Sequence record: MK514281.1
Length of the DNA: 64,000 nucleotides
Reading direction: 5' to 3' (one strand)
In this document: piece by piece, positions 768 through 63,906 of the stretch
Layout of the letters: every line of letters starts with the position of its first letter
Numbering within the stretch: position 1 is the stretch's first letter
Program-made: the position numbers and the translations under genes
The notes under the pieces: generated by a model
Told to the model about the DNA's origin: nothing
What the model saw: only the letters and a program-made list of their open reading frames with translations
The model's database searches: none

Positions 768-803
768 AAAAGACCAGGGGGCTTACTCCTTGGTCTTTTA
801 TGC
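768..803 (+). terminator. Hairpin terminator followed by TATGC and a T-rich tract
   Basis: aaagacc-agggg-gctta-ctcct-tggtcttt directly after the helicase stop, then tatgctttctttccttttc. Confidence 0.65.
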
Positions 804-840
804 TTTCTTTCCTTTTCTTTTTGTTAAGGATACACAGCTT

Positions 841-1167
841 ATGAATGGTAACCGGCCAGTAATGGTGATTGGCGGCATGGGGTTGAGTCCTGCATTGATT
901 GAGCGCTTACGACAGTTAGACGACCTGGAGATCAAATTGGTGGCCGATGTGGCAATCAGTGATATCCTGGAGTTTGAACCGGGTTATGCTCGCGGCTTGG
1001 TTCAGGCGATTCAGCATCAGCAACAACGTGAGTGGAATCCCTTCCGGGAAAGCTACTGGGATAACTTCATTACCCTGCGACGTAAAGAAGTCAACGGACA
1101 TACCCGCATTCCTCCCAAGAAAGCCACCTGCAGCTCCCGTCGTAAGGGACGGAGGTTCAAGGGATGA
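841..1167 (+). CDS. Hypothetical protein with basic C-terminal tail
   Basis: ATG at 841 behind aagga RBS (ORF-track start 790 lies in the terminator); ATGA coupling to the next gene. Confidence 0.6.
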   Translation: MNGNRPVMVIGGMGLSPALIERLRQLDDLEIKLVADVAISDILEFEPGYARGLVQAIQHQQQREWNPFRESYWDNFITLRRKEVNGHTRIPPKKATCSSRRKGRRFKG

Positions 1168-1487
1168 GCGAGATCGATTATCGTGCATTGAAGTATTGTG
1201 TCACCAAGGTTAGTCGACGTATCCGCGACGGGGATTCCCGTAACGCGTCACGTTGCCTCTTCCAGTATGTTGAGACGCATGCCGCATTACAAGACATGGC
1301 CGCCATTGATCGTCTTTTAGCACAGTGCCGAGAAAATAAGGTACCCCTAAAAGAGATCAACAAAGTCTCGTTACTGCGTGCATGCTCATGTTTACGCCCC
1401 CACCTTACAGAGTATCAGTCGTGTATGGACCTGTGGCGCCAGGACATTAAAGCGGCGGGTATGGAAAACTTATTAATAGGATTGTGA
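1164..1487 (+). CDS. Hypothetical protein
   Basis: 107 aa, 4-bp overlap with the upstream gene, operon-like packing. Confidence 0.6.
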   Translation: MSEIDYRALKYCVTKVSRRIRDGDSRNASRCLFQYVETHAALQDMAAIDRLLAQCRENKVPLKEINKVSLLRACSCLRPHLTEYQSCMDLWRQDIKAAGMENLLIGL

Positions 1488-1488
1488 T

Positions 1489-1851
1489 ATGTCTGATTAT
1501 TGTGCGGATATCTTTAAAGCGATCAGTTGCAAAACCCCCACCAAAGGCAGTGAACTTTACATCGATGATTTCGGTGATCTGTGGATGTTGATTCCCAAGC
1601 TTAACCGCTTCGGTGAGCAGTCAGTGTTTCGTCAGTATGCTGGTAACCTTGCGTTGATGGCTGACCGCGGGCAGATGTATCAGGGTCAGTTATATGTGTG
1701 TGAGTTGATCCCGGGATATCACTTGGTGTTAACCAACCAAGCCGTGATGGTCAACCAATACAGCCTGGTGCAGTATGTGAAGACCCGTGCTGCGAAAGTG
1801 GAAGCGCGCTACCGTAAGAAACCCAAGCCGATGAGCCGAGCTTACGCGTAA
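1489..1851 (+). CDS. Hypothetical protein
   Basis: 120 aa, starts 1 nt after the upstream stop. Confidence 0.6.
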   Translation: MSDYCADIFKAISCKTPTKGSELYIDDFGDLWMLIPKLNRFGEQSVFRQYAGNLALMADRGQMYQGQLYVCELIPGYHLVLTNQAVMVNQYSLVQYVKTRAAKVEARYRKKPKPMSRAYA

Positions 1852-1881
1852 GCAACCTGACTGACAAGAAAGGATAGACCT

Positions 1882-2391: not shown

Positions 2392-2430
2392 CACCTTCGA
2401 TTAACCTTACGTAATAAGGAACGCCTCACC

Positions 2431-3433: not shown

Positions 3434-4335
3434 TGGCTTTAGATCAAGAGTATTACGAAAAGGCATTAGCGGTGCTCGCTTCCAAAGGTTTCCCTGATAA
3501 GGAAGCAGACGAAATTGCCACAACCCTTTCTGTCTATCTGCCTATGCGATTCATCAAGGCTGGTGAATGGGCGCTGTTGTCACAGGACGTGACACCCGTT
3601 AACTCGTTGGCGCTCAAGCACCTGGAGTTACTCGAAAGAATTCCTGAGTTAAAGAAGCCCATGATTCTTAAGATGCCGACCGATTTCACCTACACAACCT
3701 ACGGTCAGGAGTATTGTCCAGGTGCCGATGCACCCGTATACAAAACTGGCCCTGATGGTTACACACATCACCCGGTAGGCTGGGAAAGTGGAATTACTGG
3801 TGTGACGGGTATTTCTGGCGAGGATGGTGTTGAAATTGGCGGTGTTAAACCTGTACGTCATGATTTCAAATACGCGTTACCACCCGAGCTCGGTTTACCG
3901 AAGGGTGTAACACCGGAACAAGCTAATTATCTGAAGCTTCATGACCTCAGTGATATCGAGGGGATCAAGCGGGCTTATCCAGATATAGATGAAGAGACTG
4001 CTCAAAGTCTGTCGGCTATGCAGCGTAAGATCGACCAACGTTTAGGGCGTGCACATCGTGAAACACGCAACTCTGAAATGCTTGGTCAGCGGGCTCAGCA
4101 GCAGTATCGTGGTAGCTTGTTTGAGAAGTTCTTGATTGACGAACCGATCGGTGAACCTAAAGGCATGACCGTCAAGATCATGACGCACTCCATTCGCAAC
4201 TTCGGCCACGGGTTACAAATCAGCACACCGTTGTTTGGCCAGAGTCATAAATCTCCAACGGGCCCACAAACTATGCCGGGTCTTGAAAAGGGACGTAATG
4301 GCCACGGCAAGCGTAAAAAGAAAGGTAAACGATGA
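3433..4335 (+). CDS. Hypothetical protein with basic C-terminal tail
   Basis: 300 aa, TAATG coupling, ggaga RBS. Confidence 0.7.
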   Translation: MALDQEYYEKALAVLASKGFPDKEADEIATTLSVYLPMRFIKAGEWALLSQDVTPVNSLALKHLELLERIPELKKPMILKMPTDFTYTTYGQEYCPGADAPVYKTGPDGYTHHPVGWESGITGVTGISGEDGVEIGGVKPVRHDFKYALPPELGLPKGVTPEQANYLKLHDLSDIEGIKRAYPDIDEETAQSLSAMQRKIDQRLGRAHRETRNSEMLGQRAQQQYRGSLFEKFLIDEPIGEPKGMTVKIMTHSIRNFGHGLQISTPLFGQSHKSPTGPQTMPGLEKGRNGHGKRKKKGKR

Positions 4336-5114: not shown

Positions 5115-5141
5115 TCAGTTCCCCTCAACAGGAGAGTAACC

Positions 5142-5447: not shown

Positions 5448-5658
5448 AGTTAACATCGAGCAGGCCAATCGTTATGAGGGGTCTACCGATGATTTGGTCC
5501 AGCAAGCTAATGATCGTGGTTTTCTCCAGGGGATTCGTATCACTTCTGGCGAGGACATCGATCCAAGCATTTGGACGCCTGAGAAGATCGAAAAGTTGAA
5601 AGCCGCACTTCGACATATTCGTGACTCAGAACAACGCATCAAAGGTAGCCAGGGGTAA
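5428..5658 (+). CDS. Hypothetical protein
   Basis: GTG at 5428 behind gaggg; stop lies inside the terminator hairpin. Confidence 0.5.
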   Translation: MDTNPTEVNIEQANRYEGSTDDLVQQANDRGFLQGIRITSGEDIDPSIWTPEKIEKLKAALRHIRDSEQRIKGSQG

Positions 5659-5676
5659 TACCCTGGCTTTATGCCG
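5647..5676 (+). terminator. Hairpin + TTATGCCG
   Basis: agccaggg-gtaata-ccctggct-ttatgccg. Confidence 0.65.
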
Positions 5677-7391: not shown

Positions 7392-7424
7392 AGGCAGGGG
7401 GACTACTCTCTGCCTTTATTTTTT
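7392..7424 (+). terminator. Intrinsic terminator
   Basis: aggcaggggg-actac-tctctgcct followed by ttatttttt. Confidence 0.7.
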
Positions 7425-8470: not shown

Positions 8471-8523
8471 CGGCATATAGGCCCTCCATTACGGAGGGCC
8501 TTTTATGACATCTTTTTTTTTTG
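8471..8523. terminator. Bidirectional terminator between convergent units
   Basis: cggcata-t-aggccctcc-attac-ggagggcct-tttatgac then poly-T. Confidence 0.75.
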
Positions 8524-14927: not shown

Positions 14928-15380
14928 ATGACGAACAAATCGGAGATCTCACACGGTGGTGGTGATCAGCCTATGGAAAAAGAGCAAAGCAACTTATCCG
15001 TACTGGTGAACTACTCCACAGGTGTGATGGAAGGTGACCGTTTTAATTACTCGGTTGCATTGGCGCTGTTGAAAGACGGCATCAAAGTGAAACGCGAAGA
15101 CTGGAAGAACGCTTTCCTGGTATTCGTCCCGGGTAGTCAGAATGTTGAACTGCCAAAAGGGTCGCCGTATGAAGTCGCACTCCACGGTAAGAAGTCCGTT
15201 GCCAATATTCGTCCGCACATCGATCTGTACACGGAGTACGGTGAATTCGAAGTCGGTTGGACCGCCAACCAGGAAGACACCAACGCCGATGACTGGATGA
15301 TTGTCTTAGACAAGAACACCAATCAAGACGACAGTGCCGACGAAGAGAAAGAGTCTTCACAAGACGACTCGAAGTCATAA
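14928..15380 (+). CDS. DUF2829 / Tad2-like anti-Thoeris/anti-CBASS nucleotide-signal sponge
   Basis: FNYSVALALLKDGIKVKREDWKNAFLVF ... IDLYT...GWTANQEDTNADDWMIV follows the DUF2829 pattern (F.eAl..lk.G.kv.R.gW ... W.psq.D.la.DW.iv). Confidence 0.75.
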   Translation: MTNKSEISHGGGDQPMEKEQSNLSVLVNYSTGVMEGDRFNYSVALALLKDGIKVKREDWKNAFLVFVPGSQNVELPKGSPYEVALHGKKSVANIRPHIDLYTEYGEFEVGWTANQEDTNADDWMIVLDKNTNQDDSADEEKESSQDDSKS

Positions 15381-15385
15381 ACTCC

Positions 15386-15414
15386 AGGAGAGCTTCGGCT
15401 CTCCTTTTATGCCC
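15386..15414 (+). terminator. Hairpin + TTATGCC
   Basis: aggagagc-ttcg-gctctcct-tttatgccc. Confidence 0.7.
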
Positions 15415-16911: not shown

Positions 16912-17018
16912 TCGGCATATATTCTGTCTCGTTAGCGTAAGCTCGCTAAAAACCCTTTTAAAGTTTTGTATAACAAACTATCAACTTTGTAGAAAGAAAC
17001 AAATAGGAAATTAATCTC

Positions 17019-20583: not shown

Positions 20584-20598
20584 TTGATCATTTGATCA

Positions 20599-20650
20599 GC
20601 ATAAGGAGAGGCCTCGCGCCTCTCCTGTTTATGCCGTCTTTTTTTTTTAC
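20599..20650. terminator. Bidirectional terminator GCATAA-hairpin-TTATGCCG + poly-T
   Basis: gcataa-ggagaggc-ctcgc-gcctctcc-tgtttatgccg between convergent genes. Confidence 0.75.
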
Positions 20651-21741: not shown

Positions 21742-21771
21742 CGGCATAACGGAGCAGGCAACGCCCACTCC
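21742..21771 (-). terminator. Hairpin + TTATGCCG (minus strand)
   Basis: Minus reads ggagtgggc-gttg-cctgctcc-g-ttatgccg after the 22789-21812 gene. Confidence 0.55.
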
Positions 21772-22846: not shown

Positions 22847-22890
22847 CGGCATAAGGGAGTGGATACCCTGACCGTAGCCAAGGTATCCAC
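22847..22890 (-). terminator. Hairpin + TTATGCCG after the DNA polymerase gene
   Basis: Minus reads gtggatacc...ggtatccac-tccc-ttatgccg. Confidence 0.6.
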
Positions 22891-29240: not shown

Positions 29241-29292
29241 CGGCATAAAGGCCTGGCCTTCCTTGCGGAGGGCCAGAGCCTTGCTTATGCCG
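29241..29292. terminator. Bidirectional CGGCATAA-hairpin-TTATGCCG
   Basis: cggcataa-aggc-ctggccttcc-ttgc-ggagggccag-agcc-ttgc-ttatgccg; the right-hand motif overlaps the TAA stop of the minus-strand gene. Confidence 0.75.
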
Positions 29293-37580: not shown

Positions 37581-37598
37581 CCGTCATAAGGCAAAGAG

Positions 37599-40366: not shown

Positions 40367-40459
40367 ATTATTATATGTGTTAACGGCCCTGCAGGAAACG
40401 CGGGGCCTTATCACAATACGATCGTATTTAATTTCATGAAATTAAGGTAGAGACTCACT

Positions 40460-41835: not shown

Positions 41836-41869
41836 AGGGGGAGAGGGGTTTCCCTCTCCTCTTATACCG
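41836..41869 (+). terminator. Hairpin + TTATACCG
   Basis: aggggga-gaggg-gttt-ccctc-tcctc-ttataccg. Confidence 0.6.
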
Positions 41870-44229: not shown

Positions 44230-44569
44230 TAACAGTAACAAGGCGTTGTACAATGCAGCGCGCTTGCCTGTTCTTTACGAGTACCCGCATGACTTCACCC
44301 CGTATGCCCGTTTACTGGCTAACGAGAAGCAAGGCGCACAACCTTCGCAGGCGTTTGCTGAGATGCTGGCTAAGGTAACGGGCGATCCCTGGACACTGAC
44401 CCCTAAGCAACCGTATACCCTGTACGGTGCCAAGGTGACGTTGATTGGTGAGAACCAGCCCAACTTCCCAACCAGTAAACGGTTTCCTTACGTCCTGGTG
44501 TTGCAGTTGAGTACCCGGTATCAAGAACGCAAGTTATACCTGAGCTTTAAGATCTTGAAATCGAGCTGA
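44222..44569 (+). CDS. Putative small virion protein
   Basis: ATG 44222 behind aggagg, overlaps the upstream stop. Confidence 0.6.
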   Translation: MTDNSNKALYNAARLPVLYEYPHDFTPYARLLANEKQGAQPSQAFAEMLAKVTGDPWTLTPKQPYTLYGAKVTLIGENQPNFPTSKRFPYVLVLQLSTRYQERKLYLSFKILKSS

Positions 44570-44612
44570 GCATAAGGAGAGGGCGTTTGCCCTCTCCTCT
44601 ATGCCGTTATGC
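44570..44612. terminator. Bidirectional GCATAA-hairpin-TATGCCG
   Basis: gcataa-ggagagggc-gttt-gccctctcc-tc-tatgccg-ttatgc between convergent genes. Confidence 0.75.
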
Positions 44613-45308: not shown

Positions 45309-45356
45309 TACGACTCCTTGAAGAATGCTGGGGCTTTCACCCCAGCACAGACGCCG

Positions 45357-48464
<3,108 letters not shown>

Positions 48465-48523
48465 TACAAACCTCTTTTAGTAACTATATTGCTGTTTAGT
48501 GTAAACGGGTTCACACTCGTGTG

Positions 48524-49057: not shown

Positions 49058-49188
49058 ACTTTTCTCCCGTAAGCGCCGTTTCTGATGATCATATAATAAT
49101 TTCTTTTCTACAAAACTAACCTAATCAAATAGGTATTCTGTGGTGAAATCGTATAGACATTAAAAGAAAGGGGATTGAGGATTACATC

Positions 49189-52003: not shown

Positions 52004-52010
52004 GTGTTCT

Positions 52011-52640
52011 ATGACCCAGGTGATACATAGCACGGAATTTCTAAAGAGTGAACTGGAGCGTTTACAAGTGGTGCTGTTCGAGTGCCGCTATGAATGCCGT
52101 ATCCGCCAACGCGATCTCTACGATGTTGACTATCTGCAAAACGTGGGACTGCCATCATCTGGGATAGCTTGGCTCGATCAGGAGATGGACAATCAGTTAG
52201 TGGATATGTTCCTTACCATTAACAAGATGACCGAGTGTGTGAAGAACGGGTATAACTTCTACATCAACTACCCAGAGACCTACGCAGGGATCATCTACAA
52301 AGCGATCACCGACTACATCCGCTATTACGGCGAGCTCTCGGACCGCTTCCCGAACTTACCGTTACCGGATCAGGATGACTTTGAAATCCTGGACCAGACC
52401 GCCAGTAAGATCTATACAGTCTATCGCTGCTACGAGAAACCGGAAGAGCTTTCGGGGATTGTCGGTCGTCTGCGTCGCCGTCGTCGCTCCTTCGACCTGC
52501 AGAACCCGGTAGCCGAAGTTGAGCTGCAGCGTGATGAAGATGGTAACGTGATTGCGAAGGAACATAACTCGATGCTGGATATGTTTGCTGATCGCATGAC
52601 CGTGAAGAGGATTCCAAAGCATGAATTTGGAGAAGAGTAG
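52011..52640 (+). CDS. Conserved hypothetical protein
   Basis: 209 aa, coupled within the structural block. Confidence 0.6.
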   Translation: MTQVIHSTEFLKSELERLQVVLFECRYECRIRQRDLYDVDYLQNVGLPSSGIAWLDQEMDNQLVDMFLTINKMTECVKNGYNFYINYPETYAGIIYKAITDYIRYYGELSDRFPNLPLPDQDDFEILDQTASKIYTVYRCYEKPEELSGIVGRLRRRRRSFDLQNPVAEVELQRDEDGNVIAKEHNSMLDMFADRMTVKRIPKHEFGEE

Positions 52641-53982
52641 TCTTTATAATGAAATCATCGCGATCGGGACCAAAGGCGGGCGCAGTGTCTACCGAATAAA
52701 GGCGGAGATCTTTTTTGATACCACCGTCTGTTCAGTATTCCGGGTCCGCAGTCTCAATCGCTTTGATGACTTCATGAACCGCTATAGTGAAGAGCTGAAC
52801 ATTGAAGTGGCAATGTCGGAGGGGGTGTACAACCAACAGATTATCCCCAATGCCACGCGGCTTAAGATGCACCTGGTGATTAACAAATACGAACCGGGAC
52901 AAGAACCCGTCAGTACGCGCTACACACTTCGGGTGTTTCCTAAAACCGGATATGACCCGCAGCTGACACAACAACGGGCCGCGGATATCAATCAGGCTGC
53001 GATTGCTGCAACCTCCTTGCAGTTCTATCAGTTCCAGTTGTTTACCTCAGCGATTGAACAACTCAGTGCAACGCCATGTGCCGGGATCTTTCCTACCACC
53101 TCACCGGCCGCATTGATTCGGGTGTTACTGGGCGGTGTGTCAGAAGGGCTGGAGTTACCGTTAGAGGAAAAACCGCTGGGGATGGAGATGTACCCGGTGG
53201 ATGCGGTGACGCCAGATGGCAAGGAGATCATCAAGAACCATGTGGTGGTCAAGCCGATCCAGTTGTGTGACTTGCCGGGCTTTCTGCAGCACGAGTATGG
53301 GTTGTACAAGACAGCGATTGGGTCGTATTACCATAAGCAGTATTGGCACATCTGGCCGCTCTACAACACCAAACGGTTTGAGCTGGTACGCAAGAACCTG
53401 ATTGTAGTCAACGTTCCTAAGGATAAGTTCCCTAACATGGAACACACCTACGAGATGCGTGGCTCGAGTCTGTGTGTCTTGGCGACCGGTGACACTGCGG
53501 TGCACGACACGTCGAACCTGGCGCAATACCAGGAAGGCAATGGCGTCAGGGCAACCCGGTCCTCTGCGATGAGTGGCGATGAGGGGATGGAGGTGAAGCA
53601 GGGGCAAGTGGTGCTGCAGCGTGGTGCGACTAACTCTGAGTTCATTACCAATACCCGTCAAGGTGCAGTTAACTTTGCCCCCATGGCTGGTGAGATCACA
53701 GACAACAGTTATCGCATTGTGTCAAAGACAGCGGTTAATAACGGATCTACTATTCAGGTGACCTGGCAGAACGCCGACCCTGAGCTGATCTTCCCCGGCA
53801 TGCCGGTGAAGTACCTCTACATGAAGTCGACGGGTGTTGAACAACGCTACGGGACGCTGGTGATGGCAGAGGCGCATTATCGACTGGCACAGGACGGGTT
53901 AGCTGATGAGGTGATGTTGTGTGATATGGCCTTAACCTTGTTCATTGATACCGCCGACGAAACCGCCAACAGTTCATTGTAA
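52621..53982 (+). CDS. Virion structural protein, putative baseplate hub
   Basis: 453 aa; QVTWQNADPELIFPGMPVKYLY C-terminal barrel; synteny. Confidence 0.55.
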   Translation: MNLEKSSLYNEIIAIGTKGGRSVYRIKAEIFFDTTVCSVFRVRSLNRFDDFMNRYSEELNIEVAMSEGVYNQQIIPNATRLKMHLVINKYEPGQEPVSTRYTLRVFPKTGYDPQLTQQRAADINQAAIAATSLQFYQFQLFTSAIEQLSATPCAGIFPTTSPAALIRVLLGGVSEGLELPLEEKPLGMEMYPVDAVTPDGKEIIKNHVVVKPIQLCDLPGFLQHEYGLYKTAIGSYYHKQYWHIWPLYNTKRFELVRKNLIVVNVPKDKFPNMEHTYEMRGSSLCVLATGDTAVHDTSNLAQYQEGNGVRATRSSAMSGDEGMEVKQGQVVLQRGATNSEFITNTRQGAVNFAPMAGEITDNSYRIVSKTAVNNGSTIQVTWQNADPELIFPGMPVKYLYMKSTGVEQRYGTLVMAEAHYRLAQDGLADEVMLCDMALTLFIDTADETANSSL

Positions 53983-54047
53983 TTAGTGACATTCATCCCT
54001 AGTCTTATGAGCTCCTGGCTCATAGGCTAGGATGGATTTATTCTTAG

Positions 54048-54057
54048 ACCTACATTA
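54048..54057 (+). promoter_or_regulatory. Candidate early promoter ACCTACATTA
   Basis: Exact 10-mer, 35 nt upstream of ATG 54092. Confidence 0.55.
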
Positions 54058-54091
54058 TCGAGATGATCCAATAAATTATAAGGACTTCACC

Positions 54092-55570
54092 ATGAGTCGC
54101 AATTTCTCGTTGACCACCCTCATCAATCTCCTTCAAGCTGAGCTCGATTGGTACTCTACCCAGTTTCCTGAGTTTGAAGCCGATGTGCTGGACATTGTTA
54201 ATAACACCATCAGCGGTAAGTTAACCGCCAGTGACTTTGGCTGGACTTATAATCGCCTGATCTCTAAGTTTGGTCTGGTGATGCAGGATACCGGCAACCC
54301 GCGGGCAAGGTTCTTGCGCTGCATCGTACCGAACTGCACCCACGGCATTATCCCACAGCTACAGAGTATTCGTAATTACGGTGATCAACACATCGATCGT
54401 GATCACATCATGGCCAGCGCTGTAGAGATCTTGTTGGGAAATTCCGTCGCCCCGATTATCAGCAGTTTTTATAAAAGCATCAAGCAGGGTGGCGATACTG
54501 CACCGTGGGAGCGTGAGGGCTATTATGAATTGTTGTATATGCGCTTGCGCAACAACCGCCATCAATTCCCTTCAGGCTTTCAGGTGCTGCAACCCCAACC
54601 GCGCTTGACGGATGAACTCTCCACTGAGATCTATCGTCGCTTTGATGAGATTGTCGGTGCCCTGGAGAAGTTTAACAGCGACCCACAATACGCGTCAGAG
54701 AACTACACCCTGCACGGCCTGCAAGATCCGTGGACTCATGCCGGGACTCGGGGCGATACCATGGCAGCGAAGTTATGCCGTGCAATTGATGGTGAACGCC
54801 CCCACCACTATGACGAAGATGAAGACGAGGAGCTTTCGTTTAACCTCACGCCCTATAACCCGGAAGCGGATTTAGTGAGCACGCTGAATAACGTGCATCA
54901 TCTTCAGCCGATTGTGAAAGCCATCGTCAGTGCGGCAGCCACCAAAGAGTCTATTGATGAACGTTACCCGTTTCGTCAACCTCACGGTGTGCTTCAGTTG
55001 GTGCAGAAAGGTTACTTCGATGGCCTGACCCCAAAACACCTCAACGAGATCTACAGCACCGATCTCACTATCCCTGCGATCCACAACGTATTAAGTAAGG
55101 TAACTTACTATAGTCGCGATGACCATGCGCAGCTTGAACTCGACCAGAACGGCAACATTCCTGATCGTCAAATCAACCCGGTGATCACTAACTTTAACCA
55201 AGCTCTAAACCGTACATACCCAACCAATATCCCGTTACTGACCATTCCAATGCCGGTGGCCATGAACGAAGAGCTCGACTTTGCAGCCCTCGCGAAAACC
55301 GAGATCAGAAACTATAACCGGGATGGGTATCTGTGGTTGTTGCTCGGTATCGTCTTTGACATCAGTAAGATGACCGTGACGTATCGCCGTCAGCTGAACC
55401 GCATCAAAGGCGTGCCGTTACGTAAGGTGTGGGAACTGCCTCTGATCGTCACGCCGCATCGCACCATCGAAGAGATCTTTGCTGATCTTGGTTATGAAAT
55501 CTTAGAGGTAACTGATCCAAATGCCAAAACAGAAGCTCCAGTTCGAAAACCTGGTGGCAAGCGTAAATGA
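54092..55570 (+). CDS. Hypothetical protein
   Basis: ATG 54092 behind aagga (ORF-track start 54032 overlaps the promoter motif). Confidence 0.7.
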   Translation: MSRNFSLTTLINLLQAELDWYSTQFPEFEADVLDIVNNTISGKLTASDFGWTYNRLISKFGLVMQDTGNPRARFLRCIVPNCTHGIIPQLQSIRNYGDQHIDRDHIMASAVEILLGNSVAPIISSFYKSIKQGGDTAPWEREGYYELLYMRLRNNRHQFPSGFQVLQPQPRLTDELSTEIYRRFDEIVGALEKFNSDPQYASENYTLHGLQDPWTHAGTRGDTMAAKLCRAIDGERPHHYDEDEDEELSFNLTPYNPEADLVSTLNNVHHLQPIVKAIVSAAATKESIDERYPFRQPHGVLQLVQKGYFDGLTPKHLNEIYSTDLTIPAIHNVLSKVTYYSRDDHAQLELDQNGNIPDRQINPVITNFNQALNRTYPTNIPLLTIPMPVAMNEELDFAALAKTEIRNYNRDGYLWLLLGIVFDISKMTVTYRRQLNRIKGVPLRKVWELPLIVTPHRTIEEIFADLGYEILEVTDPNAKTEAPVRKPGGKRK

Positions 55571-55916
55571 TTTCGCTGGTCAACTGGGTCAGGTAGCTGT
55601 GCTGATCGAAGGCTTTGATGGGGGCGCTAAGCGCCCCTATTTAGCGTTTGCTCTCCATATGCTCCTTTCATCAGACGCGTCCGAGCGACTGGGTGCCGGC
55701 TGGTACCTGTTACTCATTCGGGCTATGTACAACGAACTCGGTCATGAGTTCACTACCGTCGATGAGTTAGATGACTTCATCGATACCTTTTATGACTTGT
55801 TTGATGCGCACAACATCGAACTGAACGACGCCGTCGTGAACGAATTGAATATCGCTTTCGACATGTTTGAAGAGTCACTCGACCTGGGTGATGCCACCGA
55901 CGAGTATGACGACTAA
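55521..55916 (+). CDS. Acidic hypothetical protein
   Basis: 131 aa, D/E-rich C-terminus. Confidence 0.55.
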   Translation: MPKQKLQFENLVASVNDFAGQLGQVAVLIEGFDGGAKRPYLAFALHMLLSSDASERLGAGWYLLLIRAMYNELGHEFTTVDELDDFIDTFYDLFDAHNIELNDAVVNELNIAFDMFEESLDLGDATDEYDD

Positions 55917-55945
55917 TTCCCATCCTTAATTAACCGAGACGTAAA

Positions 55946-56167
55946 ATGAAAAAGAACATCCTACTGGCTGTGGTCCTGCTGTCTGCATTTCCTTCTGTAA
56001 AGGCATCCATGGATGTCCCGCCAGACCCGTACACCATTCAGTGTTTATCGGAGACTGAATGCTTTTATGCTAATGGACGTAAAGTGACTGAGCAGGAACT
56101 TCAGAAACTGGCGCTCCTGATTCAACAAGAGGAACAAAATGAGTCAAGTCAAAACAATGACGGCTGA
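55946..56167 (+). CDS. Small secreted protein
   Basis: Signal peptide MKKNILLAVVLLSAFPSVKA; C-x5-C pair. Confidence 0.6.
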   Translation: MKKNILLAVVLLSAFPSVKASMDVPPDPYTIQCLSETECFYANGRKVTEQELQKLALLIQQEEQNESSQNNDG

Positions 56168-56921
56168 AGAGATCAGAAAGGCGATGTGGGTCTATGATGC
56201 ATTGTCTAACAGCCACCGTGGTCTGTATGTCAAAGCAGAAGGTCCGGATGGTTCGGGTAAGTCAACCTTTGTGAAACTGCTAACGGAATGGTTACAGACA
56301 CAGTTAGGTAACAGCCGGGCGGTGATGACCCGTGAAATGGGCGGCACTGCACAAGGTCGTGTCTTTCGTGAAATGGTGCTCTTCCCTAAAGAGACCCAAG
56401 AGCTGGATCTGCAAACTGAAACGCTGCTGTGCTGGGCTGATCGGGTTGAAGGCCAGAAGCAAGTTAAAGCCTGGTTAAACGCCGGGATCGCTGTGGTTCA
56501 GGATCGCACCTACTTCTCCACCTACGCTTATCAAGGCATGCTGTACGGACAGTCACCGTTGGTAAGCAAGATTCATTCCGGCCTGGACATCATGAACGCG
56601 GATATCGTGTTTGTGTTGGACGTTGACCCAGAAGACATTCTGGCGCGCGTAGGTCGTCGTGAAGCAAAGGGTAATGAAGATCCAACGGGTAATGACCGGA
56701 TGGATGTGATGACCGATCGGCAACTAAAAGACCTCTGCTACTTTTACCGGGGTATTGAGCACCAGATGCCCGCCTGTGCCAATATCAAACAATCTAAAGT
56801 CATCCACCTGGATGGCCGGCAAACGCAGGAGCAACTGCTGCAGGATGCCATTGTTCACTTAACCCGTTTTCTGGATGAGAAGGAACGCGAAGCAAATGAC
56901 CTCTGCCGTGCTATTTGCTAA
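56139..56921 (+). CDS. tmk: Thymidylate kinase
   Basis: P-loop EGPDGSGKST, TREMGGT, WADR, DRTYFSTYAYQG, FVLDVDPE. Confidence 0.9.
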   Translation: MSQVKTMTAEEIRKAMWVYDALSNSHRGLYVKAEGPDGSGKSTFVKLLTEWLQTQLGNSRAVMTREMGGTAQGRVFREMVLFPKETQELDLQTETLLCWADRVEGQKQVKAWLNAGIAVVQDRTYFSTYAYQGMLYGQSPLVSKIHSGLDIMNADIVFVLDVDPEDILARVGRREAKGNEDPTGNDRMDVMTDRQLKDLCYFYRGIEHQMPACANIKQSKVIHLDGRQTQEQLLQDAIVHLTRFLDEKEREANDLCRAIC

Positions 56922-57207
56922 TGTGACCGAACCTCTGTTGCTGAAACTCAAAGAGGTGAATGAAGCGGTTGACCTCGAGTGGCTGATTGAACAGGGTAAG
57001 ATGGTCAGTCTTATTCGTAAGAACGTCGTGCGTGCTGAACGTGATGACGGCGCGCATGTGCATGTGATGGTGTTTCCCCGCGAGTATCTTCTGAACCTCG
57101 CTGAACGCCATGACGATGCGCAATATCAGGCCTGGTTAATCGAAAGCAAGATCAAGCCTTTTAAAGAGCATTACGCTCACGGTAGTCTCAGTATGTACGT
57201 GTACTAA
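56896..57207 (+). CDS. Hypothetical protein
   Basis: ATG 56896 behind aagga; followed by a terminator. Confidence 0.55.
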   Translation: MTSAVLFANVTEPLLLKLKEVNEAVDLEWLIEQGKMVSLIRKNVVRAERDDGAHVHVMVFPREYLLNLAERHDDAQYQAWLIESKIKPFKEHYAHGSLSMYVY

Positions 57208-57211
57208 CTTT

Positions 57212-57246
57212 AAGCAGGAGTAAGGAAACTTACTCCGCTTATGCCA
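57212..57246 (+). terminator. Hairpin + TTATGCC
   Basis: aagc-a-ggagtaag-gaaa-cttactcc-gctt-atgcca. Confidence 0.65.
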
Positions 57247-57270
57247 ATTTAATTTAACCGGACGTGTATC

Positions 57271-57681
57271 ATGAAATTAGGCTTTTATTACGCATTAGTA
57301 AAGAACCATGTGTCAGGTAAACGTGAGATCTTATCCATCCAACGTGAGAGTGTCGCAGAACTCTTCCCAGTGTGTTATACGCGACTCTGTAAAGAGATTG
57401 AGGAAAACCACAGTGGTAAGTACGAAACCTCAGCATTGGCCTTTGGTGCGCTTAAAATCGAGTATCATGCAGCCAGTCAGTTGGGAACGATATGGATTGG
57501 CCATACCAAGGTCGGGATCATCACCCCGAAAGCCACGTTGATCTCGGTAGGCGTGGAGTATCCGATTGGGACTTTCTATCTATCCCCACCACCAAGTCTG
57601 CAGATTGGTGACCCGGAATTGATTCAGTTACGGGATGTGGTGGCCAGTGTAATTGGCGATGCAACATGGGTGATGAACTAA
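57271..57681 (+). CDS. Hypothetical protein
   Basis: 136 aa, TAATG-coupled to the next gene. Confidence 0.6.
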   Translation: MKLGFYYALVKNHVSGKREILSIQRESVAELFPVCYTRLCKEIEENHSGKYETSALAFGALKIEYHAASQLGTIWIGHTKVGIITPKATLISVGVEYPIGTFYLSPPPSLQIGDPELIQLRDVVASVIGDATWVMN

Positions 57682-58178
57682 TGGCGAAGATCAATGTCTC
57701 GAATGCCACGACCTATAAGTTCTTTAAAGAACGTGCAAGCCATACACTGCGTCAGTTTGCCCAAGATCTTGATCCGGGTATTTTGCCAGTCGCAAGAGAG
57801 CTTAACGCAATAGAAGGGATCGCCCCTGTCTGGAGTTGTGAGTCACACCCTAAAGGCAAAAGTACGGCTGACCGTGACGCTTACGTTACTTGTGTGGTCA
57901 CCGGCCGTGGAATGGATAAGATAGAAGAGATCTACAAAGAGTGGATGCGGTTGCTAGACCAAGATCAATTATCCTGGCATAGTGGCGACAGTGCTCAACG
58001 GCGCAGAAAACGAGTGTATGCTCACCAGGTAATGATCAAAACACGCCGCCGGACTTGGCCCGATGATTTCTCTCGCCATTATATTTCGGTGTGGCTGGGG
58101 TATAGCGGGGTCAATGCTCTCAACAAGCGCTTGGTGCTTCTGTCGTTTGAACAAGCTATCCGTAACGTAACCTTTTAA
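57681..58178 (+). CDS. Hypothetical protein with a TYW3-like N-terminal motif
   Basis: LDPGILPVARELNAIEGIAPVWSCESH. Confidence 0.55.
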   Translation: MAKINVSNATTYKFFKERASHTLRQFAQDLDPGILPVARELNAIEGIAPVWSCESHPKGKSTADRDAYVTCVVTGRGMDKIEEIYKEWMRLLDQDQLSWHSGDSAQRRRKRVYAHQVMIKTRRRTWPDDFSRHYISVWLGYSGVNALNKRLVLLSFEQAIRNVTF

Positions 58179-58185
58179 ACTTAAT

Positions 58186-58252
58186 CGGCATAACCCCCTG
58201 AGAGAGAAGCGCAATGCTTCTCTCTCAGGGATGCCTGAATCTCTTTTTTTTT
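58186..58252. terminator. CGGCATAA-hairpin-ATGCC + poly-T
   Basis: ccctgagagagaagc-gcaat-gcttctctctcaggg, 15-bp stem. Confidence 0.75.
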
Positions 58253-58372
58253 AGTCTGGTTAAATATAGTGGATAGAGAATTAACTTGAATAACAAAAAA
58301 TAAAGCAAAGTAATATCAACGCCGGTAAGGGCTACAACAGTTGTTCTAATTTTCAGGCACGTAGCCTAGGAG

Positions 58373-58409
58373 AAAAAAAGGAGGAAGCAGCTTATCCAGT
58401 TACTTCCTC
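58373..58409 (-). terminator. Intrinsic terminator of the DnaB gene
   Basis: Minus reads gaggaag...cttcctc then cttttttt. Confidence 0.6.
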
Positions 58410-58450
58410 AAAAACGTTATTTCTCGTCGTCCCCATTCTGGGACATAGTA

Positions 58451-59983
58451 TTACCCAAACCACGGAGCTCCACCGCCATCAGAGTTTGTCTCTCCGGCAA
58501 CGTGCTTACGGGATTTGTCCTTTCCATTCACATCATCAAGAATACCGACTCCAGGTTCGAACTTGTAAACGCAATATTTATCACGCTCAGGTGTAATCGA
58601 AATGGTGCGATGCTTACCGCGCTGAATGCACAGATAAGACTCTTCACCAACACGGACAATATGGATAATCATTTCCACATCGACTTCTTGGTCGATCTTG
58701 GTACAGTTATCCCAATAACCTTTATTCGCTGTTTCACGTGGAAGGTCTTCTTCGAGACCGTTACGGACCAGCATCTTCGCAGCAGGACTCAACTGATGCG
58801 GAGTAATGACACAGATACCACGAGCAGATGTAAAGTTACGGACACGACGGAAAAGATCACGGTACTCTTGTCCCGCAACACCTTTCTCGCAACCTTCTTT
58901 ACTGAACATCCCCAGGTAGTCGATGGTTAATAGATGAATCTCATAGCCCATGTTCTCAAAGTGCTTGATACGCTCAAAGAGATTACGGTAACCAAACTGC
59001 GATGGGTTAACACGACAGAAGTTGACTTCATAACCGTTAACAGATAAGGCGGCTAAGACTTCACGGGCTGCTTCCGCTTCATCTACTGTCTGATGGTTAT
59101 GATCCAGGCCATCGATGTTTGCTTTGATCTTCTTCCACCACAGAACCATGTTGTCGGTCATGTTGTTTTCAGAAGAGATGTGCATGATCATCGGTTTCTT
59201 CTTCGGATCACGCATGTACGGTTTGTTAAAGGTGGCGATCTGACGTGTCAGGTCCATGGTGAAGCCGGTCTTGTTGTTGTGCTGCAATGCACCAATCAAG
59301 ACGAACTCACTGCGACGGAACCCGCCCACTTCACCCAGCATGCGGTTGATACCGGTGTAACCTGTCTTTAATACCCCAAGCGTAGAAGACTCTTCTTTCG
59401 CTTGCTTAAAGATCTTACCCACTTCTTCCAGGTTACTGACTGTAATGTCAGAGATCACCGCTGGGTCAAACTGTTCAGAGACACCGATGTTAACCGTTTC
59501 AATCTCTTCTAAGAGCTTGACCACCGCAGAATCCATGTCGATGTCTTCACCGCCAAAGATGATAGGTGCTGCAAACCGCTTGATGATGGCCTTCGCCCGA
59601 CGGTGCTGATCCCACTTACGCAGTTCACGTCCAATGGCGACCACAGACTGTTTGGCTTTGTAAGGATCATCCTCGGTGCTGCTGACACCCATTTCTAAGG
59701 CTTGGTAAGTTGCCGCGTCATGGCCGCAGTCAGTTAACAAGCGTTGAAGCAGATCAGTTTTATCCAGTGGTTGATTCTTAGGACGACTAATCATCCAACG
59801 AATAGTACGGCGTAAAGCCAGCTGTACATTGCGGGATTCGTCATCACCTGTACCTTCAACAGGGGTCGGAATGTTATCCAGGAGCTCATCAACGAACTCA
59901 CTGCTGTCATCGCTGTCAGTGCCAACAATGGACTCTTGATAAAATAACGTAATAATCTTTATGAGTAATAGAACGGTTTCCAT
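58451..59983 (-). CDS. dnaB: DnaB-like replicative helicase (phiKZ gp118-like)
   Basis: LKTGYTGINRMLG..GG; divergent Walker A GALQHNNKT; ISSEN; Walker B LLTIDYLG; PHQLS; RGKHR. ATG 59983 behind gagggg. Confidence 0.85.
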   Translation of the reverse strand: METVLLLIKIITLFYQESIVGTDSDDSSEFVDELLDNIPTPVEGTGDDESRNVQLALRRTIRWMISRPKNQPLDKTDLLQRLLTDCGHDAATYQALEMGVSSTEDDPYKAKQSVVAIGRELRKWDQHRRAKAIIKRFAAPIIFGGEDIDMDSAVVKLLEEIETVNIGVSEQFDPAVISDITVSNLEEVGKIFKQAKEESSTLGVLKTGYTGINRMLGEVGGFRRSEFVLIGALQHNNKTGFTMDLTRQIATFNKPYMRDPKKKPMIMHISSENNMTDNMVLWWKKIKANIDGLDHNHQTVDEAEAAREVLAALSVNGYEVNFCRVNPSQFGYRNLFERIKHFENMGYEIHLLTIDYLGMFSKEGCEKGVAGQEYRDLFRRVRNFTSARGICVITPHQLSPAAKMLVRNGLEEDLPRETANKGYWDNCTKIDQEVDVEMIIHIVRVGEESYLCIQRGKHRTISITPERDKYCVYKFEPGVGILDDVNGKDKSRKHVAGETNSDGGGAPWFG

Positions 59984-60011
59984 TATGCCCCTCGTTATAA
60001 GGTAATTAACC

Positions 60012-60641
60012 ATGTACAATGAAAAGTTGGTAATTGTGCCAGCGCCAATCCTTCGGGCTATTCACAATGCAAAAGAAAGTGAAGCAATTTTAACGTGTCC
60101 GAAAAGAATGCTTTCCATATTATCCAGACGTGATGTCATTTTCTACTACGTGGTGAATACTCTTCTTTGTGACTATTCCTATAAAGCAGACCCAGCCAAC
60201 CCAGAACCACCGTTGGTGTCGGCGCTGCGGGATCTGTTGTCACACACTAACGGCGTAATGAATGCCTTTACCTCGCCGGCGTGGGTTGCGTTTGTTGATG
60301 AGAACGACGCTGATATCCAAAGCGAGCGTCGACTGAAAGCGCGTAGTATCTATGAGTACCTGACTGGTGAACCGTATGCATGGAATTCAACAGAAGGTGA
60401 CGATTCTTTAAGCTATATCTATGACACCCAGGCGAAAGTCGTGGGAGGTGAAGCCGTTGCAGTGTTGATTAATGCTGTGAAGGAGAACGATAGTTACAAT
60501 ATCATCAGTCATCAACGTTTATTCGAACAAACCATTCTGGCGTTCACTACACTGACAGCAGACACCAAAAGCTTTGCTTCCCTTTATAAAGGCTTTTGTG
60601 AACTGGTTTACCAAGACTCGCTAATCCGACGTTTTGTGTAA
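60012..60641 (+). CDS. Conserved protein upstream of the capsid gene (phiKZ gp119-like position)
   Basis: 209 aa; synteny DnaB(-)/gp119/MCP. Confidence 0.6.
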   Translation: MYNEKLVIVPAPILRAIHNAKESEAILTCPKRMLSILSRRDVIFYYVVNTLLCDYSYKADPANPEPPLVSALRDLLSHTNGVMNAFTSPAWVAFVDENDADIQSERRLKARSIYEYLTGEPYAWNSTEGDDSLSYIYDTQAKVVGGEAVAVLINAVKENDSYNIISHQRLFEQTILAFTTLTADTKSFASLYKGFCELVYQDSLIRRFV

Positions 60642-60783
60642 GAATCTATGTAATAGTATGTAAATTGCCATTTCGATGGCGGCGTACTGTTATGACCGTG
60701 TGTTAGCGCGACACAACCCCCTGTTTATGTACATAGACAGGTAATATCGAAAACTTATATAAGTTATTGAAGGAAACAACGAA

Positions 60784-63051
60784 ATGGCATTGAAACTTCT
60801 GCATGTAGCTAAAACCGCCGACATGCTGTCACGCATCCAATCTCAGATCAATGGCGGCCATGCATCAGGCGACGCTACCGCGGTTAAAAGCTACGGTATG
60901 GAGTCGCTTGACGGCAACACTCTGGGCGCGCAGGAAACCGCCATCAAAAATGGTATCTCTGTCATTACCGACGTGATCGCTCAGGGCACTGCATCTCAGG
61001 GCCAGAGCTACGCCGGTAACGGTCTGGAAGGTTTCTCTGATGCACAGATCCAAGCGGCATCAATCGCACTGACTATCGGTGGTGACTTCCAGGGTTACAT
61101 CGGTGCACTGAAAAACAACTCTAACCGTGCCATGTCTGCATCTGACCTGAGCCTGGTTTCCGGTAGCCGTTACGGCTCTGCTAACATGAAGCAGGGTTAC
61201 GGTACCGAAGCTTTCGAACAGGCGCAGAGCTTTGTTCCTCAGCAGAACGCAACGGTTGAATACAACCTGAAAGCGGCTAAGCAGGATGCCGTTGGTGAAG
61301 CCTTCTTCCCAACTACTACCCTGACGCCAAACGACATCGGCCTGAGCGTAACTGTGCCGGTTGACATCGTTGAACCTTTCATCAAGCACAAAGCAAATGG
61401 CGAAGTGACGGATTGGCAGCGTAAGAAGCTCATCAACGCAATGCGTGACCCGACCATTCTGCGTAACGACGCGATCAAGCTGATTCCTTATCGTCCACTG
61501 GACGGCAGCAACGACGCACAGTTCGCAGTAGGCGTGCCGAAGTTCAACGAAATTCAGGGCGGCGAAGAAGTACCAACTGGTGCACTGAAGCCTGGTATCA
61601 AAATCGGTTTCATGGGTCTGTGCTCTACTCCGTCTCTGGTTCAGGCCGGCGCGCTGGAAGCATCTGATCAGATCGACACCGGTGCTCGTCTGCAGTACAT
61701 CTGGATCGAAGTAGCTAACGCCTCTGGTACCAAAGAGCTGTTCAAGCTGCGTACTGATCACCTGGATCGTTCTACTTTCCAGAAATCTCAGGAAGGCGAT
61801 AAGTTCGAGACGTCTCTGGACTTCTCTAACATCACCATCGCGCTGAACGACCTGAACAAAACCACCGACAACACCGATTCAGCTCTGCTGGCTCCGTTGG
61901 TGACTTCTGGTCAGCAAGCGATCCTGGCGCTGGATATCAAAGGCACCATGAACCACGAGAAAGGCAGCCTGGTAGTTAACTCGCTGACTAACCCGTCTAT
62001 CATCCGTGTTTACGATACCGTGGCTAAAGAAGATGCGAACACCAAGTCTGGTGCTCTGCGTGACGCAATCGACGCTCTGACGATCACCTTCAAAGGTTAC
62101 TTCGTCCGCGCTAACCTGCGTAACAGCAACTTCCGTACCCGCGAGCAGCGTGTTGACCGCCAGACTTCCGTGTACAAGTACATGGTACAGCTGGGCGCGC
62201 CAATCACTGCTATCGCTCCAGTAACTGACGCATGGGGCCCGAAAGAGTCTATCGCAGTTGAAACCCTGAGCAACGCAACGTATGCACGTAACTCCGCAAT
62301 GGCTATCAGCCGTCTGCTGGACTACGTTGAAACCATCCGTGATGCAGGCGTGACCAACAACGGTCTGTGGCAGCGTTACGATGAGAACAGCATCGAAGGC
62401 GTTGGTAAAGCTGTAGTTGATCCATGGTACGGCGAAGGTAGCTTTGACATCTCTAAAGTTGTCAACGGTGTTAAATCTTCTCAGACCCGCGATGACGTTT
62501 CTGAAAAGATCCTGAACATCCTGCGTACCTACGCATACCGCATGAACGCCGAGTCTGGCTACAACGTTGCACTGCAGATGCTGTACAACGAAGTTCAGCC
62601 AACGCTGGTTATCGCAACCGACAACATCATCGCGCAGTACCTGATGGAAGTTGGTGACCTCCGCACAGCTGGTATCAGCTTCAAAGTGCACGTGGCCACC
62701 ACCAACAACATCGAGATGCGCGGCAAGATCATCATGACCCTGTCTCGTATGAAGTCAGGTGGTCTGGATCTGCTGACGTTCGGTATGCACCTGTGGGTAC
62801 CTGAGATCGTAGCAACTGTTAACGTAATGCGTAACGGTACCTACATCGAAGAAACCATGGTGCAGCCGCGTAACCTGCACGTAGTGGTTTGCCCAATCGT
62901 GGCGAACATCACCATCACCGGTCTGGAAGAAGCGTACACCGGCAAGATCACTGTCCCTGTTGACATCGTGAGCGAGCCTGAGTCTGCTGGTACCCAGGAC
63001 CTGGGTGGTCTGAACACTACTCCGGCAACTACTACCAACCCTGCTGCGTAA
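60784..63051 (+). CDS. Major capsid protein precursor (phiKZ gp120-like)
   Basis: 755 aa; propeptide with YGME/S, NGLE/G, YGTE/A sites; EAFFPTTTLTP; PRNLHV; very strong codon bias. Confidence 0.9.
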   Translation: MALKLLHVAKTADMLSRIQSQINGGHASGDATAVKSYGMESLDGNTLGAQETAIKNGISVITDVIAQGTASQGQSYAGNGLEGFSDAQIQAASIALTIGGDFQGYIGALKNNSNRAMSASDLSLVSGSRYGSANMKQGYGTEAFEQAQSFVPQQNATVEYNLKAAKQDAVGEAFFPTTTLTPNDIGLSVTVPVDIVEPFIKHKANGEVTDWQRKKLINAMRDPTILRNDAIKLIPYRPLDGSNDAQFAVGVPKFNEIQGGEEVPTGALKPGIKIGFMGLCSTPSLVQAGALEASDQIDTGARLQYIWIEVANASGTKELFKLRTDHLDRSTFQKSQEGDKFETSLDFSNITIALNDLNKTTDNTDSALLAPLVTSGQQAILALDIKGTMNHEKGSLVVNSLTNPSIIRVYDTVAKEDANTKSGALRDAIDALTITFKGYFVRANLRNSNFRTREQRVDRQTSVYKYMVQLGAPITAIAPVTDAWGPKESIAVETLSNATYARNSAMAISRLLDYVETIRDAGVTNNGLWQRYDENSIEGVGKAVVDPWYGEGSFDISKVVNGVKSSQTRDDVSEKILNILRTYAYRMNAESGYNVALQMLYNEVQPTLVIATDNIIAQYLMEVGDLRTAGISFKVHVATTNNIEMRGKIIMTLSRMKSGGLDLLTFGMHLWVPEIVATVNVMRNGTYIEETMVQPRNLHVVVCPIVANITITGLEEAYTGKITVPVDIVSEPESAGTQDLGGLNTTPATTTNPAA

Positions 63052-63078
63052 GCACCAGGCGCGAGAGTAATCCGTAGC

Positions 63079-63118
63079 GCATAAACAGAGGAGGAGCAAT
63101 GCTCCTCCTCTTATGCCG
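63079..63118 (+). terminator. GCATAA-hairpin-TTATGCCG after the capsid gene
   Basis: gcataa-aca-gaggaggagc-aat-gctcctcctc-ttatgccg. Confidence 0.75.
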
Positions 63119-63156
63119 TGTGATTTTATAGAGGCACACACCAGGGGCGGATAGTA

Positions 63157-63870
63157 ATGCTTGAATTACTAATGATAGGAAGGAAGAAAGCAACAGGGGG
63201 TGGGATACCTGCAGATCTTGGACCAGGACCTGCCTCCATGCTTGGGTATTACGAACGACCGGATGGCGGTAACTCGGGGTACTTCGGTACCTTTACTAAT
63301 TTTGTTTCAACAGCTGGGTTATGTCAATCTATCGGGTTAACTGCAGGCTATCAACAAACTGAGAATGCCACTTGGCATAAGTTTCTGTTAGATGGTAAGA
63401 TCCTCTTTATACCAACCAACTATATAGTGCGTAACCTCCATTGGAACTACATTTATAATGCCGGGGCAGTATATGGGGATGACAGTTTTGGTCTTTATCA
63501 AAGCCCAACGCCAACAGCACAGAGTGCCAAGCATGTGACGGTGGATGGTCGGGTTTATCGCGTGCGGTTAGTATCTATCTCAAATGGTGATCCGGCTCTG
63601 ACAGGCCAAATCGATAAAACCACCGAATGGGGTCGGTTGATGTATCCGATTGATCCAACGGTAGATGCTAGTAATACTGAAGCGGGTAAGAAATGGGGTA
63701 ACGTGGGACTGCTTTTGAGTTCAACGCAGATTCTGGCAAAGGAGACCTACGCCAGCACACCTGCTAGTAGCCTGGTTGTGGTTACGAATTCTACGACACG
63801 CTCCGCTCAATCTAAATCAACCGCACCCAGTAACTGTACCTGGCGTCCTATTCTTGAACTTGTGCAGTAA
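63157..63870 (+). CDS. Virion structural protein of the phiKZ gp131-like paralogue family (MLELLM N-terminus)
   Basis: GPGP...GYFG...W.KF.LDGKILFIP...W..IY.AGAVYG...WRPILEL. Confidence 0.7.
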   Translation: MLELLMIGRKKATGGGIPADLGPGPASMLGYYERPDGGNSGYFGTFTNFVSTAGLCQSIGLTAGYQQTENATWHKFLLDGKILFIPTNYIVRNLHWNYIYNAGAVYGDDSFGLYQSPTPTAQSAKHVTVDGRVYRVRLVSISNGDPALTGQIDKTTEWGRLMYPIDPTVDASNTEAGKKWGNVGLLLSSTQILAKETYASTPASSLVVVTNSTTRSAQSKSTAPSNCTWRPILELVQ

Positions 63871-63875
63871 GCTCT

Positions 63876-63906
63876 AAGAGGAAGGCTCCGGCCTCCTCTT
63901 ATGCCG
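63876..63906 (+). terminator. Hairpin + TTATGCCG
   Basis: aagagg-a-aggc-tccg-gcct-cctctt-atgccg. Confidence 0.7.

Follow-up and report, generated by a model that had tools for sequence, protein, structure and literature searches.

Probable phiKZ-type transcription terminators with a non-U flank in Erwinia phage Rebecca

The 64,000 nucleotides (nt) analysed here, hereafter called the window, are positions 209732-273731 at the right end of record MK514281.1, the 273,731 bp genome of the Agricanvirus Erwinia phage Rebecca. Many of its gene blocks end in GC-rich hairpins that are followed, in the direction of transcription, by TTATGCCG or a closely related flank rather than by a run of T nucleotides, which raises the question of what process this flank serves and what might read it. 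The original prediction, made from the letters alone, was a signal for termination, 3' processing, RNA stabilization or export that is recognized by phage-encoded RNA polymerases (RNAPs) or by a phage RNA-binding protein. We conclude that the elements are very probably phiKZ-like (Chimalliviridae-type) jumbo-phage transcription terminators, in the form used by Agricanvirus. An element of this kind has already been mapped by RNA sequencing in the phages phiKZ and 201phi2-1, and thus it is not a new kind of signal.

Enrichment, placement and conservation of the element

There are 11 copies of TTATGCCG in the window against 1.81 expected, a count that none of 100 shuffled sequences reaches, and the relaxed form YTATGCYG is found 17 times against 6.8 expected. 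The hexamer TATGCC alone shows no enrichment (32 in the window versus 26.6 expected), and therefore the signal depends on the longer word and its surroundings. A GC-rich hairpin directly precedes nine of the 11 exact copies, and the other two (25014 and 54773) are intragenic, lack a hairpin and correspond to about the number expected by chance. This enrichment and hairpin association bear out the recurrent combination of hairpin and TTATGCCG that had been described. The letters given in that description are present at all 19 sites named (at 799, TATGC only), and 17 of these sites directly follow a stable GC-rich hairpin, at a distance of 0-4 nt, the preceding 45 nt having a folding free energy (ΔG) of -13 to -30 kcal/mol. 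The minus-strand site at 16913 is doubtful, because its stem is weak, the gap measures 5 nt and the minus strand has no gene upstream of it. Sites that had been missed are located at 8503 (plus strand, TTATGACA) and, as variants, at 7416 (TTATTTTT), 40408 (TTATCACA) and 58229 (plus strand, GGATGCCT). A search of the window against Rfam gave no matches.

Genome-wide tests were made on all 273.7 kb of Rebecca, with open reading frames (ORFs) called anew, whose stops match the annotation for 67 of the 70 genes in the window, and with a simple hairpin finder that returned 394 hairpins. A 12-nt weight matrix was refined iteratively, and its expected hits were taken from a Markov genome. This matrix reads Y-T-T-A-T-G-C-C-G-t, wherein TTAT is the most informative part and the subsequent G, C, C and G each stand at 53-70%. 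There are 43 hits of at least 13 bits against 4 expected, and in 40 of them the upstream 40 nt have a ΔG of -12 or lower, as compared with 6.8% of random positions. Hits of at least 11 bits that lack a hairpin number 21, when 34 would be expected by chance in all, and therefore the extended motif does not exist apart from hairpins. The matrix and the enrichment of TTATGCCG agree on a flank matching TTATKYYG(T), with a GC-rich stem-loop directly upstream. The trailing T is weak in Rebecca, and the window has no excess of the exact string TTATKYYGT (6 versus 3.9).

A hairpin side was considered to be in terminator position when it lies from -25 to +80 nt after the end of an ORF on the same strand. 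There are 90 such sides, of which 46 are followed by TTATG, 63 by TTAT, 37 by TATGCC and 18 by TTTT (within 12 nt). TTATG follows 15 of the 698 other hairpin sides, several of which are true terminators that were misfiled through spurious ORFs. Hairpins at tandem junctions carry the motif on the sense side in 31 of 62 cases and on the antisense side in one, and the two sides of the 309 intragenic hairpins carry it in four and two cases. The motif is found on both sides of the hairpin at 12 of the 22 convergent junctions, on one side at five and on neither side at five, and so both strands usually bear it at such junctions, in line with the earlier claim. Thus, the flank is in sense orientation at the 3' ends of genes and transcription units and is bidirectional at convergent pairs. 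The basal GCATAA/TTATGC helix is then a by-product of one hairpin having to supply a flank to each strand. Overlap of the motif with a TAA stop codon, as also reported previously, is confirmed at 29285-29287, which is the stop of the minus-strand gene gp292.

The low count of TTTT near hairpin sides in terminator position likewise agrees with the claim that several copies lack a U-run. The Rebecca element does not have the U (T) run immediately after the stem that is characteristic of a canonical intrinsic terminator, and a scan of 44001-64000 for canonical hairpins with T-tracts gave a chance-level result (16 versus 15.4). In sense orientation, the loops of the hairpins are UUCG in eight cases, GAAA in six and CGAA in none. 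This oriented use of UUCG and GAAA, and never CGAA, points to selection on an RNA hairpin in the sense transcript.

The 55 hairpins that bear the motif have 53 distinct sequences, with two sequences each found twice. Further evidence comes from the Erwinia phage pEa_SNUABM_48, whose capsid protein is 65% identical to that of Rebecca and which is syntenic with it over 22 kb. At its junctions after the capsid gene, between gp302 and gp303 and between gp316 and DnaB, the stems are unrelated to those of Rebecca and TATGCCG is kept. For the site between gp300 and gp301, the sequences of the two phages are TTATACCGACC and TTTATTCCGACC. The conserved part is therefore the flank and not the stem, and selection acts on the flank rather than copying having spread it. 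The closer relative Special G (97.4% identical) has no differences in 109 motif positions, but this comparison is without power, since the two phages differ at only 0.5% of all intergenic positions. Over window positions 20000-64000, Rebecca and Special G differ at 0.5% of intergenic and 2.6% of coding positions, so that conservation is about fivefold higher between genes than within them.

Likeness to terminators mapped in phiKZ and 201phi2-1

There are 133 termination sites mapped in phiKZ by ONT-cappable-seq (PMC10914365), and the 61 predicted intrinsic terminators at mapped sites share a stem-loop followed by TTAT, with the consensus ...GGGRRGGBYTTATKYYGT (Putzeys et al. 2024, PMC10914365). 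Terminator motif A of 201phi2-1 (n = 59) is like the phiKZ motif, and eight 201phi2-1 terminators stop transcription when carried by a two-reporter construct in uninfected Pseudomonas chlororaphis (PMC11512511). All six of the termination coordinates printed for 201phi2-1 (PMC11512511) fall on the 8th base after the stem, within TTTATGY[Y]G. Similarly, a northern-validated small RNA of phiKZ (270595-270485, minus strand) begins at TATG and ends 7 nt after its stem, within TTATATT. The presence of the same hairpin and TTATKYYGT flank in phiKZ and 201phi2-1 therefore argues that the Rebecca element is an intrinsic-like terminator of the phiKZ type, wherein a UUAUGCC tail of 7-8 nt replaces the U-tract. 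Sequence, position, orientation and conservation were seen in Rebecca itself, and the location of the RNA ends and the independence from phage factors would carry over from its relatives by analogy.

The elements of Rebecca and phiKZ have in common a GC-rich hairpin, an immediately adjoining (Y)TTATG-Y-Y-G, a location at unit ends, some bidirectional copies at convergent genes and little or no U-tract. They differ in that the flank is sharper in Rebecca (G-C-C-G) with its weak trailing T, and in host and GC content. The polarity of the arms is also reversed although the flank is the same: purines predominate in the 5' arm of Rebecca hairpins (0.77) and pyrimidines in that of phiKZ hairpins (purine fraction 0.35-0.38). 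The former value is the mean for the one-directional terminators of Rebecca, whose 5' arms are GGAGAGG-like and whose 3' arm is CCUCUCC. Rebecca and 201phi2-1 share a hairpin followed by TTTATGYYG, and both have a terminator in the same place after the major capsid gene; the Rebecca site after gp319 is positionally orthologous to the published 201phi2-1 termination site 132,419. A second, stem-lengthening motif is common in 201phi2-1, whereas the comparable lengthening in Rebecca (GCATAA/TTATGC) is found mainly at convergent junctions.

Canonical intrinsic terminators resemble the phage elements in that a stable RNA hairpin is followed by positions rich in A/U, with release only a few nucleotides past the stem, and the elements of the relatives act with the host polymerase without phage factors, as canonical terminators do. 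However, a canonical terminator has a U-tract, and positions 5-8 after the stem in Rebecca are conserved G/C positions instead. Another point of comparison is the class II pause and termination signal of T7 RNA polymerase (ATCTGTT-type), which is a sequence-specific, hairpin-free signal of a single-subunit polymerase. It and the Rebecca flank are both short, conserved, non-U sequences that would help to stop a phage polymerase, but there is no sequence similarity between them.

Most probably, then, the nascent RNA folds into the GC-rich hairpin, often with a UUCG or GNRA tetraloop, and the polymerase would release it some 7-8 nt past the stem, within Y-TTATGCC-G at the step from C to G. The RNA 3' end would be UUAUGCC, and the conserved G might be either the next base, left unincorporated, or the last one. 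The 3' ends of 201phi2-1 lie 8 nt after the stem and inside the motif, and therefore, by analogy, UUAUGCC of Rebecca would be the RNA tail, with the last G located just beyond it. The U, U, A and U adjacent to the stem could form the weak upstream half of the RNA-DNA hybrid, which is the usual role of a U-tract, and the GCC-G that follows these A/U pairs could be a conserved setting for release or pausing. Where two genes converge, a single hairpin would serve both strands, with a flank on each side. We infer such roles for the individual flank positions, including the G/C positions.

The part of the original prediction that concerns termination at unit ends thus stands, given the position of the elements, their strand specificity and their homology to the mapped terminators of phiKZ and 201phi2-1. 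Its proposal that the flank is read by phage RNAPs, or by an RNA-binding, processing or export protein, is not demonstrated. Terminators of this type from 201phi2-1 act in uninfected P. chlororaphis (PMC11512511), and the basic activity therefore does not depend on a phage factor.

The same analysis was applied to stretches of 30-50 kb from other phages. Two phiKZ stretches of 50 kb have TTATG after 10 of 24 and 7 of 20 hairpin sides in terminator position, and partial use of the motif is found in RSL2, a Vibrio phage and PCH45. Goslar carries a conserved interrupted hairpin followed by TTCTATGCCG, TTTATGCTG and similar sequences. The Goslar hairpins (1406-1450, 4112-4160, 15345-15379, 17014-17050 and 37374-37416 of the Goslar stretch) all repeat, with hardly any change, a single interrupted stem, CCCTCYTCC TTCCC TTAC GGGTT GGAGRAGGG, in contrast with the diverse stems of Rebecca. 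Y2, a phage of the same host that is not a chimallivirus, has TTATG at none of 11 hairpin sides in terminator position. The flank is found in relatives of phiKZ and not at these Y2 sites, and it therefore belongs to the phage family rather than to the host. Literature searches turned up no description of the element for Erwinia phages. The present results extend the terminator motif of phiKZ and 201phi2-1 to phages of Erwinia, Escherichia coli (Goslar), Ralstonia and Vibrio that have very different GC contents. They also offer a working rule for delimiting transcription units when Agricanvirus and related jumbo phages are annotated, since the missing U-tract defeats standard terminator finders.

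Several observations weigh against the assignment to phiKZ-type terminators. About half of the hairpins in terminator position lack a good motif, and there are a few copies on a strand with no upstream gene (genome 11349, window 16913 and window 37582, all minus). In SEGD1, which is SPN3US-like, the tails are mostly TTTATTTT, and therefore the G/C part of the flank is not obligatory for the family. The RNA 3' ends proposed for Rebecca are projected from phages that share only about 27% identity with it in their capsid proteins, and end positions from ONT-cappable-seq are accurate only to about 2 nt. Moreover, if only a weak hybrid is needed, then the conservation of A, G, CC and G is left unexplained.

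The copies without an upstream gene (genome 11349-11384, window 16913-16953 and 37582-37628, all minus) are antisense to plus-strand gene arrays, and the one at 37582-37628 comes after a 39-nt imperfect hairpin that spans the gp297/gp298 junction. These antisense copies may be due to chance, may be stops for antisense transcripts or may be relics of rearrangement.

Alternative readings of the flank

The Rebecca protein gp2 is a homologue of the phiKZ non-virion RNAP subunit gp123 (E value of 3e-44), gp250 is a homologue of the non-virion subunit gp74 (3.5e-80), and several fragments of RNAP beta and beta' are annotated in the genome, one of the beta fragments being in the window. The window also encodes a DnaB-type helicase, a DNA polymerase, a tail fibre, virion proteins and the phiKZ-like major capsid protein, which is related to the capsids of phiKZ-like phages. 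The phage thus carries phiKZ-like virion and non-virion multisubunit RNAPs, and the homologues of gp123 and gp74 mean that a jumbo phage with its own polymerases had been assumed correctly.

The late promoter consensus of phiKZ is TATG, with G at +1 (PMC4666361), and in a 2026 structure the TATG of the non-template strand lies in a gp123 pocket, which is described as incomplete in the transcribing complex (PMC12809450). One alternative, which we regard as unlikely, is that the non-virion RNAP uses the TATG of the flank as its start element (T-3 A T G+1), such that hairpin and TTATG end the upstream transcript and restart transcription for the next gene, with the inverted repeat possibly aiding DNA opening. 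Rebecca has the gp123 homologue gp2, and among the 14 listed side chains of the gp123 pocket, 7 are identical in gp2, 3 are conservative replacements and 4 are different (pairwise alignment, compared by eye). The motif in tandem arrays is located about 20-45 nt upstream of the next start codon, the phiKZ small RNA described above starts at TATG, and the gap that is homologous to that of the phiKZ late promoter P119L (DnaB, gp318, capsid) begins with TATGCCCC at 59984.

However, at the 12 convergent junctions that have the motif on both strands, such promoters would fire into the end of the opposing gene. The extended motif is not enriched without a hairpin, as noted above, and it is common after non-structural genes of the small-gene region. 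P119L of phiKZ has no hairpin, and the published late-promoter logos are without upstream conservation. In a crude genome-wide test, TATG is found 12-60 nt upstream of 14 of 60 divergent starts, which is not significant against a background of 15.5%. Furthermore, the mapped 3' ends of 201phi2-1 are 3 nt past the G, and the promoter pocket is described as incomplete in the transcribing complex. These last two points also argue against a polymerase that pauses with TATG in its promoter pocket, wherein the RNA would end at U and the G would be +1. The Rebecca flank thus has in common with the phiKZ late promoter the letters TATG and a homologue of the subunit that reads them, but the promoter has no hairpin and no conserved CCG, and the flank also occurs where a promoter would be senseless, as at convergent junctions. 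In general, its TATG does not appear to be placed to drive a downstream late gene.

There are TATG sequences without a hairpin 25-39 nt upstream of start codons at divergent gaps, namely at 59984-60011 (in the gap homologous to that of P119L) and, on the minus strand, at about 11536, 33306 and 49092. These are candidate late promoters.

A broader proposal, to which we give equally little credence, is that the non-U flank is more than a weak hybrid and acts as a dedicated punctuation signal read by the phage multisubunit RNAPs or by a phage factor, wherein the beta-like subunit would recognize TATG at terminators as well, for pausing, release or re-initiation. If this were true, the same four letters would be start and stop marks across the family of nucleus-forming jumbo phages.

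It is comparably improbable that the hairpin and a single-stranded UUAUGCC tail are bound by a phage protein for 3'-end protection, for processing or for export from the phage nucleus. Such a signal would account for the conserved G, CC and G, which hybrid weakness does not, and the flank is kept across hosts of 37-52% GC. The tail would also remain in the RNA if the ends map as in 201phi2-1, and chimalliviruses have to export their messenger RNA. In addition, cross-linking peaks of the nuclear RNA-binding protein ChmC are located near start codons, as are the elements of tandem arrays, but the same study found no sequence motif (PMC11077065). The last conserved G would fall outside the RNA, and terminators of this type are active in uninfected cells (PMC11512511). 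A dispersed intergenic repeat or double-stranded DNA protein-binding site that is unrelated to transcription is very unlikely, because 53 of the 55 hairpins are distinct despite two recurring sequences and the GGAGAGG-like arms common to many stems, the motif is oriented with transcription (31/62 versus 1/62), the loop types are RNA-specific and oriented, and orthologous sites keep the flank while their stems turn over.

Terminator sites and nearby signals in the window

The probable phiKZ-type terminators identified in the window are listed in Table 1.

Table 1. Probable terminators in the window, with hairpin and flank positions
Location	Positions	Strand	Hairpin and flank
After gp251 (helicase)	769..806	+	Hairpin 769-798, TATGCTTT 799-806, partial motif; ΔG -18.8, gap 0, stem 12 nt past stop
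After gp261	5647..5676	+	Hairpin 5647-5668 overlapping stop codon, TTATGCCG 5669-5676; next start codon 5697
After gp264, T-rich variant	7392..7423	+	Hairpin 7392-7415, then TTATTTTT
gp266/gp267 convergent junction, bidirectional	8471..8510	both	Hairpin 8479-8501; minus ATATGCCG 8471-8478, plus TTATGACA 8503-8510
After gp275	15386..15414	+	Hairpin 15386-15405, UUCG loop, TTATGCCC 15407-15414
gp283/gp284, bidirectional	20597..20636	both	Hairpin 20604-20626; plus TTATGCCG 20629-20636, minus TTATGCTG 20597-20604
After gp286	21742..21771	-	Hairpin 21751-21771, TTATGCCG 21742-21749
After gp287 (DNA polymerase)	22847..22890	-	Hairpin 22859-22890, 4-nt gap, TTATGCCG 22847-22854
gp291/gp292, bidirectional	29241..29292	both	Hairpin ~29249-29281 inside perfect CGGCATAA ... 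TTATGCCG palindrome; includes gp292 stop (29285-29287)
After gp299, variant	40385..40415	+	Hairpin 40385-40407, then TTATCACA
After gp300	41838..41869	+	Hairpin 41838-41861, then TTATACCG; orthologous site of pEa_SNUABM_48 is TTTATTCCG
gp302/gp303, bidirectional	44568..44606	both	Hairpin 44575-44598; plus CTATGCCG 44599-44606, minus TTATGCTC 44568-44575
After gp314	57214..57246	+	Hairpin 57214-57238, GAAA loop, then TTATGCCA
gp316/DnaB convergent gap, long hairpin	58186..58236	both	Hairpin 58196-58230; minus TTATGCCG 58186-58193; plus degenerate GGATGCCT, then T9 run
After major capsid gene gp319	63079..63118	both	Hairpin 63087-63111; plus TTATGCCG 63111-63118; minus partial copy TTTATGC
After gp320	63878..63906	+	Hairpin 63878-63898, TTATGCCG 63899-63906

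There are 19 runs of at least seven T nucleotides on the plus strand of the genome and six on the minus strand, and examples in the window are located at 8513-8522, 20639-20648 and 58244-58252. About 16 of the 19 plus-strand runs start 8-15 nt past a terminator hairpin, immediately behind TTATGCYG(Y)C, and in many cases G(G)TT(A) comes next. Even where genes converge, or where both neighbouring genes lie on the minus strand, the plus strand is the one that carries the run. We considered these runs as the U-tract of the terminator and rejected this assignment, given their distance of 8-15 nt from the stem and their specificity for the plus strand. They may be an early promoter, used by the virion polymerase, or a second stop signal.

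Matches to a sigma-70-like promoter in 44001-64000 are fewer (12) than in shuffled sequences (21.5, standard deviation 4.5). This scarcity is consistent with transcription that is independent of the host polymerase.

The ATG within the motif was rejected as a start codon, since its reading frames are very short and there is no ribosome-binding site before it, because that position is occupied by the CCUCUCC of the 3' arm. As annotated, gp252 starts at TTG 790 and gp276 at GTG 15334, so that each overlaps a terminator hairpin (769-798 and 15386-15405, respectively). These two starts are probably mis-annotated, and the in-frame ATG 841 (after TAAGGA) for gp252 and ATG 15430 (after AAGGAA) for gp276 appear to be likelier start codons.

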